Shown here: positions 42,379 to 50,027 of the stretch, piece after piece
Layout: every line of letters begins with the position of its first letter
How positions within the stretch are numbered: position 1 is the stretch's first letter
Assembly: GCA_001949185.1 (NCBI GenBank)
Contig: BDGG01000002.1
Span: 6,748,448 to 6,812,447 of the forward strand
Direction: 5' to 3'
Length of the DNA stretch: 64,000 nt
Origin: Ramazzottius varieornatus
Taxonomy: Eukaryota > Animalia > Tardigrada
Position numbers and translations under genes: made by a program
The notes under the pieces: model-generated
Told to the model about the DNA's origin: nothing
The model's database searches: none
What the model saw: only the letters and a program-made list of their open reading frames with translations

Positions 42379-42386
42379 CTATATAG
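42379..42386 (+). promoter_or_regulatory. TATA-like box upstream of the H3-like gene
   Basis: ctatatag about 25-40 nt before the two candidate ATGs (42409, 42421). Confidence 0.35.
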
Positions 42387-42408
42387 TTAACATTTTGCTG
42401 TATTCCAA

Positions 42409-42772
42409 ATGGCCGAAAAAATGCCCGAAAAAGATACAAAGGCGCCAGAGCTAGTCATCCCACCGTTCCGATTTCAGCGGCTGGTACGGGAGATCGTCTC
42501 TGAACTCGGGGACTATCGCTTCCGGTCAGACGCACTGAAAGCTTTACAGGTATGCGAGTTTAGCTGAAGCCTGAAACTGTTTTCTAGGTAACTGGATTCT
42601 TGGTCAGGTTTGACCCCGACGGGACTTGTTTCAGATCGGAGCCGAGGATTTCATGAAAGAAGTCATGCAAGAAGGAAACGTCAACTGCGAAGCTTCTGGA
42701 CGCAACACTCTTTTCCCCGAAGATATACAAGTACCTTACTGTGGCCTCGCTCTCGTAGACTTGTGGCCATAA
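42409..42772 (+). CDS. Tail-less, divergent histone H3-fold protein (92 aa; exons 42409-42549 and 42635-42772)
   Basis: [92 protein letters not shown] aligns to H3 [37 protein letters not shown]...KRVTIMPKDIQL. Phase-0 GT-AG intron; in-frame TAA at 42388-42390; AATAAA at 43012. A possible third exon 42823-42852 would give the ending DIQ|EGVQRVTEG*. Confidence 0.85.
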
Positions 42773-45700
42773 TTCATGTCAATGACTTTAAGGGTTCACC
42801 GTAACTGCTCCGTATTTTGTAGGAGGGAGTGCAGCGGGTAACAGAAGGATAGAACGGAAGTCGCATGAAAAAGATAGTCGACCGCCGAAAGTTGTGCCCA
42901 AACTGAGCAACAATTTCTTGGAAGTCGACTACCACCTAAAAAAAATCCGACGAAATAATGCCCTACTGGCGATTTCTGCATTGGAAGATGTTTCGAATCG
43001 TTTCTTTAATGAATAAATGGAACTCGAACGACGATTGCGGCATGGTTTTGGTTTCCAATGTGAGGTAGAGCAGCTGCGTGAACAGCATCAATGTATCAGG
43101 AAAGACTGGTTGTCAAGTGGGGTATCACTTGTCCACTCGAAAGCGAATTCCAGCTGGACTAAAGGACCAGGCAATTGAGATATTTTTGAATAAGTTATTG
43201 CACACTTTACACTTGTCAAGATTTATCAATATGCATCGTAGCTATTGTCGCTAAAGCCATCCCGCGCTTGAGCGATCTTCTGTGCATATCATGACCTCAT
43301 AGACTTCCTCTTCCACCGATCACAATGCAGATGCGATGCCACAATCAAGAGCTCAACACTGCCTGCATTCTTAGGACTGGCTAAGAGATTCCTCAGAAAA
43401 CAAAGTTCCAACAGAAATTGCTGGAACAACCGTTTTCTATGTGGTGAGAAATCCTGCTTGGTATCCCATAACCATTAAAAAAATCCGACACTCTCACAAA
43501 CTTAACCCAGCCTCAATGAGACGCAATCGTATTGACCTACATTTAGGGTGTCACTCTGTTGTCTGCTTGCAATAGATCAAAAACAGTAGGAAAAGGGGAA
43601 GACTAGACCATATACAAATCTTCGCATGGCGTGAAAATTGTATGGTAATCCTTGAGCAAACGATGCGATTTCCCAATCGCGGAGGAGGAGGTTGTGATAA
43701 AGAAGGACTTCAAGACACTACCGATTGTAAAATGAGAAGCCTTTGCAGTTGGTCGTACTCGGAGGAGGATGGAGCTGAGGGATAATGTACCAGCGTTAAA
43801 TCGAAATTTAAGATCGAAGCGAAGCCATTGGTGTTAATCACCACGACGGACATGGAAGGATTAGTAGAGCACTAGGTTAATATTACTCCAGACGAAACCT
43901 AACAGTACGTCCTGTATTCATCATCCCGTACGCCTGTTCGGGACTTGTCAAATCCTTTATTCATCTTCCGTTCTAACATCTTGAGGCAAGTCCTCATTTC
44001 CGGACCAACACCAAGCGGGCGCCGGCATCTGCAGAATCGAAACAGGCCTCACTAGACGGCAAGGACCACGAATCCGTTATTCCCGAAGCTCTATGATGAT
44101 GAACGCTTTTGGGATTCGCAAGCACCCACTTCCTGCTGTCAGTTGACTGCGAGCGCCATCTGTAGAGGTGTCACTGTTCATCCCTGCCAATCTGCCTTTT
44201 AGCATGCAGCCATGCGCCGCCATTTTGTTACCACGTGTATGCGAGCTCTACTATGAGCAACATGTAGTCCTCGCACCGAAGGACGCGGTCTGACATCGAA
44301 CACTACATTGAAATTATAGCCACGATACTGTTCGTCAGGACGTACGTAGATAGCACGAGTTTCGTGCCATCTGCATAAAGTAACAGGTGAACGGATGGAC
44401 CGGTTATGAAGGCCGATCAACTGCAAGGTGTTGCTGCAAGGTGCTGCTGCAAGGTCTCGGCAGTAAGTTTGCGATCGTTGATGCGAACCTATCGATCATT
44501 TCACTCACGGCATCATGCAATGTCACTTGCAAGCCTCCCAGAGGTTCGCTGGCGACCCAGTAAGATCCAACAGCTAGGCCCTCCCCGATAATTCTCTTAT
44601 TAACCATCTACCGTCAGCCTCAGGTGATAACGTACGATATCGATTCTGATCGGCATATTTTCCAGCCACAGCAATAATTCCATTGTACTTGAGATTCAGT
44701 GGAAAGAGCGATAATCAAAGAGGCACCTTTTTCGCCTTGCCTAGCGGAGTTTTTCGAGTATGATGATTCATCGTGAAGGAATGTAGTAGAACTGCTTTAG
44801 GTCGCCAGACTAGCTCGCCGCAGATGTAAGCAGTTGTGGTCCGTCAACGATAGGCTCCTCGTGTCTGTTTGTGCGCATAATCGTCTTTGAAGGTTTCTTC
44901 CTGAACTGTAAACGTCTACTGTACTTGAAAACAGTAGTGTTTTGTAAAGTGCCATCCAGTTTGTGCTAGCCTTCAGCGGAAACCTTCGAGCTACGGTGTG
45001 CGGACTGTTCCCTGCTATTACAGAAGGAGGACCAAGGATGCGACACGATAATCTGTCTATTTGAAACGGAATTTTAGATCTGAAGGATACGCCAAGCCTC
45101 GGTAAGTTCCTAGAATAACGAGCTCTTACACTTTGGAGATTCCATCAATAATGTATAGTAACTCTCGAATGCTGCCACGACCCACGTATCCCAAGTTCCT
45201 GATACAGTCCGCCTTGGTACAGCTAAAGACAAACCAGTTATAAGGACCGAACCTCGAATTCTCTCCAAGGACTGTGTTTTTCATCGTCTTGCTCTGACCA
45301 AAACTTAGTTGCACACTCAAGCGCAGAGCTGTCACTTCGGCTTCCCACAACGCCATCTGCGGTACCGCCGGCATACAACAGTTTTGCGTATACAGATACC
45401 GAGTGAGACCGCGCAGGTTCTTGGTTATTTTTATTTCTGGATTTAGATTCCCGCTCTAAGAAACGTTGGTGATATCAACGTTACCAAAACCTGCGTGACC
45501 ATCGAGATCAGGTAGCTCTTAGAACAGCAACATCACGCAGATCACCGAATCGCTACATACTCAAAATAACGTTCAAAGGAGTACACGTGTACCAGTGTTC
45601 GATATGTGTAAACGACCATAAGATACCGGAAAAAATCACGCACTAGAATACTACACACTCAAACATAATTATGGCCTAATATCGAACTCCCACCGAACCG

Positions 45701-46678
45701 TTCGAAACAGGAGTATGGAAAACTCCACACTCCCACAATTCAGCGGGAAGACAGATCGAAAGGCACGAAGGCCTGTCGAAAAAGGCATCCACCAAGAAAG
45801 ACGCGAGATCGAGATGACTTCGTGTTTGCTATCTCATCGGTGCTACTGTCTTATTGCTCAAGACAACATGAGAATCTGAGAGGAAGGTCACGTAAGTCAA
45901 CCAAAGCCCTTCGATGCCACAATTACCAAAACAATATTCTGCTCCAGTGCTCACGTACTCTAGCGGCTATGCAGCAGGATTGGCTTCAATGGGGATCGAT
46001 GATCTGCGGGCTCGGTCAAAGGTTTGCACCATTCGATTGGTAGCGCCTTCGCACACGCAGTATGCAGCATAGCACTCGACACAGCCTTCCCATGGGAATT
46101 TCAGGGAAACTTGTTCTCATCTACGGACGTCACTCAATCAGCTTCTAGTTAAAGCTATAGTTGCAATATCGATCCGCCGTAACAGAAAGCGAGGGCTGAA
46201 GTAAAGGGGCCAAACGGGAAGAAGCCTACGCCGAACCTTCCGCTCACATTGTGAGCATGCAATCACAATAGACAAGCACACGGGCAAGTGAGGGAAGACC
46301 ACACGATCGATCCAAACCAAGACGCATAACAGCCCCACACATCCAGCCACTTTCCATGTCGAGCAGGAAAGTAGCATTCGCTGTGAGAGTATTTTTCTCC
46401 TACGTCAAACTGCAACTGAGGCCTCAAATTTCTCAAGTCGTAAAACCAGGAGCAATCCAATCTATCCCCCCTTTTTGATTCATTGAACTATGAATATGGG
46501 CCTTTCGTATTTGCTTGCCTCCCGAGATGCTTGCGGTCTATCGAGCTAATTAATTTTACCTTGAAGTCTTTCGGTGTTATCATGTGGTCCGGCAAATGGG
46601 CCTTCTGGTATGGGTCCGTCCATCCGTGCTTTTGCCTGAAACTTCCGGCGGAGCCTTAACGATGTGCTTCTCTTTCAG

Positions 46679-49600
46679 GTCCAGTCAGGATCCCGGGTCT
46701 TCCCTGCAACAAAAAGGTTCGCCATCAAAAAAGGATCTAACAGCAAAGTTAACGAATGGACGGTGGACCTCTGGACAAAAAGTAGAGACGACGGTTGCGC
46801 GGGCCAGTTGGCACCCCGATGATTGTGATAGACCAAACGAGGAAGATGCTCACTTATCTGAAACCTGCTTTGTGACACCCCTACCTTCGTGTAGTCCTTC
46901 GATAGCGCTCAGCAATTACCACTTCCCGTCTTTCAACTTTGATACTGAACCGCTCGAACCCGAATCGCCTTTCTCGTCAGTGCTGAAATCGCCAAAGATA
47001 CCGGTGAGGATGACGGAGCACCGTGTACTACCAAGCACCATACATGGAATCATCAACAGCGATAGTGGTCTTCACGTACCTGATGGAAGCAATAAACCCG
47101 AATTGCAAAGGGGCGATTCAACGTCGACCACCTCTCCGCCGGTGCCGGATCATTTTCCCAGTACCAGCGGAAGTGGCGAAAGCTGGACTTTCGGTGCTTT
47201 CTGGGAAAAAACGGTGACCACTTGCATGCTGCCTTTGACCACGATGCTATCTAAGAAACAACATAGTGCCGGTAAGTCATTCCTCTTCTGTTTTGTATTT
47301 CATTCTGCTTTATGGGACGTCGGCAAATGGATTCACCCAGACCCTTCTCCGAAGTGGCGCACACTCTCAGCCAACGACACGGACAGCGTGCGCCACTTGC
47401 CACAACGACCTGGGTAAAATCGTTTGCCGAGATCAACTAGTCGTTTCTGACAGTTTCGACCGAAATATTACAGACTCTTGGGAAATTCCGTTTGAAAGAA
47501 TCCAAGACTTACAGTGGTTAGGAAGTGGAGCGCAAGGAGCTGTCTTTCTGGGAAAGTACAATGGGACTTCGGTGGCTGTCAAGAAAGTGAAGTCGTTAGC
47601 TGAGGTTCGGGAAGTGGAGCCACTGCGGAAGATAAATCACCCCAATCTAGTAGCTTTCAAGTAAGGAAAGTCAGAACAATCTAATCCTACTTACTTACGC
47701 ATGAGAAGTCGTCTTCATCAACATGTCTTTTCGTACAGAGGCATATGCACTCAACCACCGTGCTACTGTTTGATTATGGAATACTGCCAGTATGGACCAC
47801 TTTATGATCTCATTCAGGAAGACAAGAAGATTCCACCGTCACTTGTCGCCGTGTGGTCCCATCAGATTGCTTCGGGAATGACGCACCTACACGCAAATAA
47901 AATCATCCATCGTGACTTAAAGTCACCGAAGTAAGTGCCTATGGTGATAGTTTTTTAGATTGAATTCACACGTTATACATAAAGTGATCTTTTTCCGTTG
48001 TAGTGTACTTGTGTGCAATACTCACCTCGTCAAGATATCTGACTTTGGCACCATACGGCCTTGGGCAGAGGACCAGAAAAGTATGCAAATGTCTTTCGCC
48101 GGAACTGTGGCTTGGATGGCTCCTGAAGTCATTCGCAACGAACCATGCACGGAGAAGATCGATGTCTGGGCCTTTGGCGTCATCCTGTGGGGTAAGGGAT
48201 AATGGATTAAAAATAACACAAGGCTAATGACAGTGTGATTCATCGCAAGCCATTCGTATATTCGATCAGCCGTGTTTTGTTACAAGCTGTTACTCTTCGC
48301 CCTACTTAACCTTGAAGAAAATATAAGACATTCCTACGCTAATATTAAAAAGCCCGGAAGCCAGAGAAAATGTAAACTAGGATCAAAGCAATTCATAAAA
48401 AAATTTGATTTCAGAGCTTTTGGTCGGACTTCATCCTTACCCGGGTTTGGATTCGACTTCGATCATCTGGGGAGTTGGCAGTGAGAAACTTTTGGGGCTT
48501 CCGGTGCCAGTTAGCATCCCCGACGGCTTCAAGCTGCTGCTAACCCAGTGCTGGTCCGGCAAGCCGCGGAACCGTCCGTCCTTCATCCACATCCTTTCTC
48601 ACCTGCAAATAGCCGCAAGTGAAATTACAACAATGTCCGACCTTCAATTCTACACCCATCAGGCAGAATGGAAAGAGCATACACACAGCGAGATCAAGAA
48701 TTTCCGCATTAAGAATGGCCAAAGCACCACGTTCAACAAGGAGAAAGTCCACCAAAAGCGACTACGCAAGAAGGAACTAATGTTAGCCGATGGCTTCAGC
48801 GACGAATTGTATCTGCTACAAAAGAGGAGGAAAGAGGAACTGAAACATGCCGAAGAAGTCCGCATCCATTACGAAAAGAAGCTCGAGCGAGTCAACAAAC
48901 TATACCTCGAACTGACGACTTGCACTCTTCAGTTAGAAGAACGGGAGAAAGAACTTCGCCGGAGGGAGAAACTCGTAGAAAAGGCTCTTGGGAAATCTCA
49001 GGCGGAGAAGAAGTCTAGAAGGCGAATTTTGGACTCAGTCAAGAAAGCTGGTCTGGAATTGCTCAAGCCCCATTCTTCCGTCCCCATCGAACATCGATAT
49101 GTTCATCCAGAGGTGCAACGTCAGAAGTCAGCGACCCTTCCTATGGACTACGCCATCTGGACCGCGGAGAACTCAGAGGGTGCCGTGACGGAAGACCACA
49201 TGGACGACGAGGATAAATTCGGCGAAGATGTTCTCGACAACCCTATCAAGGGGACTGAGTCTGGAAAGTACCGCCATCCTTTGATGTCCATGCGTTCACG
49301 GTCGGCAGAGTCAATCGATCCTGTTGGCTCGCTCCGGTCGGTCTCTCAGCCAAAGCTATCACCGGATCTCTTTCGAGGCCTTCCTAAACGCACACCTTCG
49401 GATTCGTTAGGCTACATCTTCCGTAGCTCAGTGAGAAAGGACTTCTCTTGTCAGTGCAGCATACCTACCGAAGATCATCACGCGGACTTGGCAAAGACAT
49501 CTGACCAAGCCACGGATGTTATTGAAGAAACTTCGCGGCATTATAAGGAACTGCCGGAAGTGCCTAGCACGTCAGCTGCGCAAGAAGCCATCTCGAACAC

Positions 49601-50027
49601 TAGTCAAGTAGCGAGGTCCAGCTCAAGGGCTCGTCTGTCATCCGAAGGGACCTTCTCTGAAGGGCTGTCGGATGTCGCGACAGACGACAGCGAATCGGAA
49701 CGAGAAGAGGATCAAGAGTCTCTCGATCCCGAACGCACTACTCATCCTAGGTCAGTATTCCAGTCCGACGAGTCCTTACAAGGCAACCTCAATCCGTCGC
49801 AGCAGATGTACCGGGATATCATAGTGAGGAGGTCCAAAGAACTGGAAAGAAAGACTGAGGAAAAGCCCGTGGAAGAAAGACATGGCTCTCTTCCTGATCT
49901 TCAGGATGCTGCCTTAGATCCACCGGATCAAGACCTCCGCCGAGCAAGTACCTCACAAGCCTCAAACAACGATCTCCAACGAACCCTCAGTTACATGTAT
50001 AGCAAAATGCCCGAAAGTAACGTGTAA
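46679..50027 (+). CDS. wnd: Dual leucine zipper kinase (MAP3K12/13, DLK-1/wallenda), multi-exon; start codon uncertain
   Basis: [82 protein letters not shown], leucine zippers [30 protein letters not shown]. Confidence 0.95.
47350..47400. repeat. Palindromic N25 element core, copy 9 (DLK intron 47272-47472)
   Basis: cgaagtggcgcac-N25-gtgcgccacttgc, outer arms cggcaaatggattcacccag / ctgggtaaaatcgtttgccg. Confidence 0.85.

Follow-up and report, generated by a model that had tools for sequence, protein, structure and literature searches.

Mammalian short H2A variants, namely H2A.B, H2A.L, H2A.P and H2A.Q, are believed either to loosen normal nucleosomes or to keep out of them. For histone H3, residues 106 through 131 form the H3-H3′ four-helix bundle and also the ASF1 site. 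To our knowledge, no described H3 variant consists of a bare, acidic histone fold whose tetramerization surface is changed throughout and yet is under purifying selection, and our search of the literature for tardigrade or tail-less H3 variants also yielded nothing relevant. Herein, we describe a gene of the tardigrade Ramazzottius varieornatus whose predicted product, called short H3 below, has these characteristics. The gene resides within a 64,000-nucleotide stretch of contig BDGG01000002.1 (assembly GCA_001949185.1, positions 6,748,448 to 6,812,447 of the forward strand), and this whole stretch is hereafter termed the window. From a comparison of its sequence with that of its one close relative in the genome, we consider it very likely that the gene is real, intact and selectively maintained, and that it encodes a functional, lineage-restricted short H3 derived from H3.3.

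Architecture of the short H3 gene

The features of the gene, given in window positions, are as follows.

42380-42386, forward strand: TATATAG, a TATA-like box located by pattern scan, 23-29 nucleotides 5′ of the first ATG
42388-42390, forward strand: in-frame TAA 5′ of the first ATG, read from the sequence
42409-42549, forward strand: exon 1, 141 nucleotides encoding 47 amino acids, ending with ALQ and then gtatgc
42550-42634, forward strand: intron 1, 85 nucleotides, GT..AG, phase 0, after ALQ
42635-42730, forward strand: exon 2, 96 nucleotides encoding 32 amino acids, preceded by tttcag and ending with DIQ, then gtacct
42731-42822, forward strand: intron 2, 92 nucleotides, GT..AG, phase 0, after DIQ
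42823-42852, forward strand: exon 3, 30 nucleotides encoding EGVQRVTEG plus the TAG stop codon, preceded by ttttgtag
43012-43017, forward strand: AATAAA, 160 nucleotides 3′ of the stop codon

Exon 1 encodes ~11 unconserved residues, the sequence PELVIPP, helix alpha1 (RFQRLVREI...), loop 1 and the first part of alpha2, through ALQ. The remaining portion of alpha2, loop 2 and the beginning of alpha3 are encoded by exon 2, and the rest of alpha3 by exon 3, for a three-exon product of 88 amino acids. The AATAAA sequence is likely to be the poly(A) signal.

An earlier note on this DNA had described the gene as hidden. It is indeed missed by the track of open reading frames (ORFs), but it is not unannotated, as the public record already lists it as hypothetical protein RvY_05658 (GAU93771.1, 88 amino acids), which carries the UniProt label ‘Core Histone H2A/H2B/H3 domain-containing protein’. 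In the public model there are only two exons, translation begins at Met5 and the second donor is not used, so that the reading frame continues into intron 2. The same note had likewise proposed a gene of two exons, a description that we replace with three exons of 141, 96 and 30 nucleotides. The paralogue described below conserves exon 3, whose presence also agrees with the exon organization of H3.3, and the alpha3 helix encoded by exon 3 of the paralogue is predicted to fold well whereas the read-through tail is predicted to fold poorly. For these reasons, the three-exon, 88-amino-acid product with an intact alpha3 appears to be the better model of the real protein.

A tail-coding exon cannot be spliced ahead of the ATG because the in-frame TAA at 42388-42390 is followed by a region (42391-42408) that contains no AG. 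Furthermore, a whole-genome scan with the Pfam family PF00125 revealed no tail-coding match in the window besides exons 1 and 2. Thus the short N-terminus and upstream in-frame stop that had been noted previously are upheld, and the upstream exon that might have supplied a tail is ruled out. Only ~11-13 residues lie ahead of the histone fold, leaving neither a basic tail (with K4, K9, K27 and K36) nor an alphaN helix. If the TATATAG box is used, the transcript would start near the first ATG, placing the start of translation at Met5 (42421), which is also where the public gene model starts. Should Met5 be the true start, short H3 may be an even shorter protein.

Histone identity and predicted fold

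Database and structure searches were conducted with the exons singly, and the public two-exon protein RvY_05658 (P0001) and the paralogue RvY_06104 (P0003) stood in for the joined three-exon protein. For residue counts, dN/dS (the ratio of non-synonymous to synonymous divergence) and the phylogenetic tree, the joined exons were read in series.

PF00125 matches exon 1 at 26.9 bits and exon 2 at 21.5 bits, each independently, and its scores against the annotated proteins are 57.5 bits for RvY_05658 and 51.5 bits for RvY_06104 (cut-off 26.4). The best sequence matches among solved structures in the PDB are all histone H3 (E = 2.5e-8), as are those of exon 1 alone, and Foldseek ranks nucleosomal H3 chains first. 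Profiles for other histone-fold proteins also detect these sequences, with scores of 25-27 bits for PF00808 (NF-Y/CBF), 16-24 bits for PF07524 (Bromo_TP/TAF) and 12-15 bits for PF15511 (CENP-T). We rejected assignment to a non-H3 histone-fold family, since every one of these profiles falls far below PF00125 at 51-57 bits. Grouping with such a family had been named previously as an outcome that would overturn the H3 assignment, and the profile, PDB, Foldseek and HMMER searches all instead place PF00125 or H3 first.

An alpha1-L1-alpha2-L2-alpha3 histone fold is predicted by AlphaFold2 for both short H3 proteins. For the paralogue, AlphaFold2 places helices at residues 30-41, 51-78 and 86-98, which correspond to H3 positions 64-75, 86-113 and 121-133, with a predicted local distance difference test (pLDDT) score of >90 across the fold. 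For the window protein in its public form, helices are placed at residues 15-26, 36-63 and 71-85. The alpha3 helix formed by exon 3 of the paralogue has pLDDT values of 91-97, compared to 52-74 for the read-through tail of the public window model. Neighbours in the ESM Atlas are generic histone clusters only. Some of those retrieved with the paralogue as query (P0003) are from Nucleocytoviricota.

Derivation from an H3.3-type gene

Every H3-type gene examined in the R. varieornatus genome carries a phase-0 intron after ALQ, and its presence in the window gene, as had been reported from the sequence, is confirmed. Only the resident H3.3 gene (L007, C15:836.7-837.4 kb, identified as H3.3 by S31 and AIG), an H3.3-like gene (L008) and the two short genes have another phase-0 intron, after DIQ. 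In all four, the middle exon is 96 nucleotides long and the last exon is preceded by a ttgtag acceptor. This second intron is absent from the canonical H3 genes (L003-L005) and from the long-tailed variants (L006, L011 and L012). Because both intron positions and the middle-exon length are shared with H3.3, an H3.3-type ancestor is indicated, and an origin by duplication of such a gene at the DNA level is well supported by these sequence features, which are stronger evidence than the comparison with vertebrate H3.3 genes made earlier. The earlier proposal of an H3.3-derived protein therefore stands.

The shared introns reveal an origin from H3.3 and not membership in the H3.3 class. Maximum-likelihood analysis groups the two short genes together with 100/99 support, and the stem that leads to them is very long, at 1.64 changes per site. 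This pair is placed in an unresolved H3 polytomy outside the clade of long-tailed H3 proteins (98/98). At the H3.3 signature positions 87/89/90 the window protein carries D/L/K and the paralogue T/V/H, and S31 is absent along with the tail.

A paralogue with signs of purifying selection

The window gene spans C2:6790856-6791299, and its close relative, RvY_06104 (GAU94306.1), spans C2:7964337-7964762, 1.17 Mb downstream on that contig and in the same orientation. Its exons of 141, 96 and 30 nucleotides are identical in length to those of the window gene and are separated by GT-AG introns. Its third exon reads AGVQRVSQG where that of the window gene reads EGVQRVTEG, and the public model of the paralogue uses this exon. 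By comparison, translation past the second donor gives tails that are unrelated between the two genes. The coding sequences align without gaps and the proteins are identical at 47 of 88 positions (53%), with exon 1 being 49% identical. The introns exhibit no similarity above background, which argues that the duplication is old. The 5′ structures of the two genes differ. The public model of the paralogue adds a 5′ exon encoding MFSVLARDTGK (L002 1327-1359; also 1486-1500) that is spliced exactly at the ATG, and the homologous acceptor in the window copy (42391-42408) reads AA rather than AG.

For this pair of genes, the proportion of synonymous sites that differ (pS) is 0.71, indicating synonymous saturation, the corresponding non-synonymous value (pN) is 0.30, and the resulting dN/dS of ~0.18 is an upper bound, with each exon giving a similar picture. 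The excess of synonymous over non-synonymous change is unlikely to have arisen by chance (Fisher's exact p = 6.5e-8). When neutral walks of the observed length were simulated, the ATG survived and no stop codon arose in just 0.8% of them. A dN/dS near 1, together with a lack of transcription, had been proposed earlier as the sign of a pseudogene, and what we observe is a dN/dS of at most 0.18 with introns and frames intact.

An acidic protein with a rebuilt surface

The residue differences between short H3 and the resident H3.3 are distributed unevenly along the fold. In alpha1, 8 of 15 residues are ancestral in both copies (FQRLVREI), and both copies also retain F84, S86, A88, L92, Q93, E97, R116, T118, P121 and D123. 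Q68, R69, R72 and R83 are among the residues that the window protein keeps. None of residues 101-114, which make up the C-terminal half of alpha2, is ancestral, and at 10 of these 14 positions the same new residue is present in both paralogues (V101K, G102E, L103V, E105Q, D106E, T107G, C110N, A111C, I112E and H113A). Another change in alpha2, A98D, is also common to both. In alpha3, one residue is ancestral and 6 of 13 are shared new residues (A127G, R128V, R129Q, I130R, R131V and R134G). Altogether, 22 shared-derived residues have been retained across the two copies.

At the positions of the four-helix bundle, the window protein carries C110N, H113A, L126E and I130R. The paralogue shares the changes at 110, 113 and 130 and has A at position 126. 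Because the replacements in the bundle region are the same in both paralogues, the tetramerization surface looks as if it was rebuilt and then conserved, and so was re-specified rather than lost or eroded. Residues L126, R129 and I130, which contact ASF1 in H3, are all changed, and a role as an ASF1 decoy is therefore unlikely.

Both proteins are acidic, with predicted isoelectric points of 4.7 for the window protein and 4.5 for its paralogue. There are 17 acidic and 12 basic residues in the three-exon window protein and 12 acidic and 6 basic residues in the paralogue. Nine basic positions have been lost in both copies (R63, K64, K79, K115, K122, R128, R129, R131 and R134), and among these R63, K64, K115 and K122 contact DNA in H3. 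The shared charge changes also include three basic residues gained and three new acidic ones.

Most of the residue-level description in the earlier note survives this recount. Its tally of 16 acidic versus 11 basic residues is exact for the two-exon model, the substitutions R63P, K64P, C110N, H113A, K115G and K122E are all borne out, and the retention of FQRLVREI, R83, F84, R116, T118 and D123 agrees with H3 numbering. Alignments to H3 structures further confirm that loop 1 is one residue shorter than that of H3. Its claim of a disrupted alpha3 holds in part, in that the helix is disrupted in the read-through two-exon model only and L126E and I130R are present when exon 3 is used, but alpha3 itself is intact with exon 3.

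Possible functions of short H3

The sequence comparisons show that an H3.3-type gene was duplicated and that the copy lost its tail and alphaN helix. Along the long stem branch, nearly all residues of the C-terminal half of alpha2 and of alpha3, where H3 meets a second H3, were replaced, and both paralogues then retained these replacements over a time sufficient to saturate synonymous sites. The near-ancestral alpha1 and handshake half of the protein would probably still pair with H4, and the rebuilt bundle surface would be expected to no longer fit canonical H3 and to form a new contact with itself or with some other partner. The H4 genes of this genome are canonical only, with three copies plus one dead fragment, and a search across the genome for a dedicated H4-like partner did not find one. 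Given the nine lost basic positions and the negative net charge, a soluble or sub-nucleosomal role would suit this protein rather than that of a DNA-wrapping histone. Because there is no tail, no alphaN helix and fewer DNA contacts, we tentatively favor a soluble or sub-nucleosomal subunit that binds or caps H4, an assignment that may well prove to be wrong. That the rebuilt alpha2 and alpha3 surface specifically forms a new interface for a tardigrade-specific sub-nucleosomal particle with H4, or that it serves an H4 buffer or cap, is a speculation to which we attach a low probability. The earlier suggestion of a protein that is unable to tetramerize and acts as an H4 or chaperone decoy is plausible, with the refinement that its surface was probably re-specified, and we found no link of the gene to stress or to the germline.

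Several points weigh against this account of the gene and its product. The evidence for selection comes from one paralogue pair with saturated dS. Among annotated proteins, neither a HMMER search of 1.84 billion representatives nor word searches at 90% clustering yielded an orthologue in another species; small unannotated orthologues may exist in other tardigrade genomes. It is unlikely that a 50% cluster conceals an orthologue, since the word searches at 90% clustering gave only the two R. varieornatus proteins. No paper in our search of the literature and supplements names RvY_05658 or RvY_06104. RNA-seq-based models and ab initio models are combined in the public R. varieornatus gene set (PMC5034306), and the annotation of RvY_05658 is therefore not proof of transcription. 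Finally, the changes A98D, V101K, G102E and I112E reside inside alpha2 and could alter the handshake with H4.

In the HMMER search, the paralogue scored 80 bits, and the other single-domain matches reached at most 53 bits and are generic H3 proteins or H3 variants. Higher-scoring matches composed of multiple stretches (P0002 and P0004-P0019) were rejected as kin because they are chimeric runs of canonical H3.

The alternative that fares best is a true nucleosomal H3 variant. Short H3 could form a homotypic bundle, either with a second copy of itself or between RvY_05658 and RvY_06104, and could thereby build tetramers with H4 and loose particles that, by analogy to short H2A variants, would lack the grip of alphaN on entry and exit DNA. 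The conservation rather than decay of the bundle region between the paralogues is consistent with this possibility, as are the retention of D123 and of R69, R72, R116 and T118, the possible new charge pair formed by I130R and I112E, and the high confidence with which the fold is predicted. However, the nine basic positions missing from both copies, the negative net charge of each protein and the want of both alphaN and tail weigh against it, and we regard this alternative as plausible but doubtful.

A second alternative holds that pairing with H4 has been lost and that short H3 belongs to a histone-fold complex other than the nucleosome, which it would form with its paralogue or with another histone-fold protein. 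The same shared derived changes within alpha2 that might disturb the H4 handshake could be read in this manner, and the weaker matches to PF00808 (above its cut-off) and to Bromo_TP are real. This alternative is nonetheless rather unlikely, as PF00125 and H3 are far better matches in all searches and the residues of alpha1 (FQRLVREI), F84, R116 and T118 are ancestral. Moreover, no candidate partner gene adjoins either copy, and no ORF within ~4 kb to either side matches a Pfam family.

It is also conceivable that the gene is a decaying, non-functional and unexpressed duplicate of H3.3, as might be suspected of a family that protein database searches find in one species only and that resides in a genome with other dead H3 and H4 relics. 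This is very improbable in light of the open frames, equal exon lengths and full set of splice sites kept in two copies despite synonymous saturation, together with the low dN/dS, the Fisher and simulation results and the retained shared-derived residues presented above. Last, the notion that this divergent H3 is the centromeric histone (CenH3 or CENP-A) of R. varieornatus can be dismissed with near certainty, even though the sequence ‘TLFPEDIQ’ of short H3 resembles ‘TLFPKDVQ’ in CENP-A, because loop 1 is shorter rather than longer, Q68 and F84 are kept, the N-terminal tail is missing, and the acidic protein falls outside the long-tailed H3 clade, in agreement with the earlier view that it is not a typical CENP-A.

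Histone stem-loops and other genes in the genome

The AATAAA sequence had been contrasted previously with the stem-loop of replication-type histone mRNAs. The AATAAA is present, but the contrast is uninformative, and the signal is not diagnostic of short H3, because histone stem-loops are not detected anywhere in this genome. No histone 3′ stem-loop was found at the canonical H3/H4 loci L003 (C12:272-274 kb), L004 (C2:7.597-7.600 Mb) and L005 (C2:7.822-7.825 Mb). A genome-wide scan also yielded none, with the best match to RF00032 among the 75 candidates scored (out of 6733) reaching 19.9 bits, below the gathering score of 34. With a consensus pattern for the stem-loop, two matches are obtained in the genome, compared to three for a control pattern. 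Replication-type histone mRNAs of R. varieornatus may end in another way.

In the canonical H3 genes (L003 1294-2016, reverse strand; L004; L005), the phase-0 intron after ALQ can be read through in frame. As a result, the plain ORF track presents canonical H3 with an odd insert of 25-30 residues.

The genome also carries many H3-type genes that have diverged; their N-terminal tails are long and their loop 1 is often extended, and four of them form the (98/98) clade noted above. These divergent genes are located as follows.

C6:1781686-1782350: divergent H3-type gene
C1:5899871-5900431: divergent H3-type gene
C1:5901437-5901855: divergent H3-type gene
C1:5914448-5915263: divergent H3-type gene
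C23:80075-81178: divergent H3-type gene
C3:3662937-3663311: divergent H3-type gene
C2:6882522-6882764: divergent H3-type gene
C16:725600-725955: divergent H3-type gene

Some of them contain stop codons (C16, C23 and C1:5901667). The dead H4 fragment (C1:7606315-7606434, reverse strand; L031 1516-1635) spans residues 28-67, is 63% identical to H4 and is flanked by stops.

Downstream of the short H3 gene is a multi-exon protein kinase gene (window positions 46584-50027, forward strand). Its kinase-domain exons lie at ~47.3-48.6 kb, and a long C-terminal exon with a charged, coiled-coil-like sequence comes after them. Nothing points to a link between this gene and the histone gene.

Implications

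If short H3 binds H4, it would constitute a natural tool with which to learn what an H3-H4 dimer does if it is unable to join canonical H3, and would be a new chromatin player in an animal that is studied for DNA protection. If its rebuilt surface indeed proves to be a new interface, this would represent a novel form of histone or chromatin handling that is possibly tied to desiccation and radiation tolerance. Short H3 also adds to an unusually wide diversification of H3 in R. varieornatus. For a parthenogenetic, extremotolerant tardigrade, germline editing by DIPA-CRISPR has been reported in a paper said to cite RvY gene identifiers, and the short H3 gene is therefore probably open to direct test by gene editing.

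Comparison with known histone systems

Like short H3, CenH3 (CENP-A) is a fast-diverged protein of the H3 fold with altered contacts, and it appears among the Foldseek matches at rank 28. CenH3 proteins differ in having a tail and a longer loop 1, which is part of the CENP-A targeting domain (CATD), whereas short H3 has no tail and a shorter loop 1. The long-tailed H3 family of R. varieornatus (C6:1.782 Mb, C1:5.90-5.915 Mb and C2:6.8825 Mb) is likewise derived from H3 and shares the intron after ALQ, but its members have a very long tail, a longer loop 1, a C-terminus of the ...MPRDISL type and the first intron only.

Marine metagenomes encode certain short H3-like proteins (P0036, P0037, P0041 and P0055) that resemble short H3 in that their tail is minimal or missing, their loop 1 is short (GDF or GDY) and their loop 2 contains the residues G-R-E/D-T, and they are ~40-44% identical to the window protein. 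They are encoded on metagenome and Logan contigs from marine or environmental assemblies and are 98-135 amino acids in length; one member of the P0036 cluster, P0155, has 128 amino acids and is encoded on a 128.7-kb contig. However, these proteins come from non-tardigrade sources, carry acidic C-terminal extensions and score no better than generic H3. They also form a separate clade of their own in the tree (100/99), and so were rejected as kin.

The mammalian short H2A variants H2A.B, H2A.L, H2A.P and H2A.Q offer an analogy, as they too are lineage restricted, fast evolving and have lost basic or docking elements. The analogy has its bounds, in that those proteins belong to H2A rather than H3, keep an N-terminal tail and are documented to be expressed in testis.

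The resident H3.3 (L007) remains the natural point of reference. It has in common with short H3 the H3-type fold, the introns after ALQ and DIQ, the 96-nucleotide middle exon and the ttgtag acceptor, as well as FQRLVREI, F84, R116, T118 and D123. Within the fold, it is identical to the window protein at 29 of 80 positions and to the paralogue at 26 of 80. Short H3 differs from it by the loss of the tail and alphaN, by a loop 1 that is one residue shorter, by an acidic instead of basic character, by the replacement of A87, I89 and G90, and by a rebuilt C-terminal half of alpha2 and alpha3.

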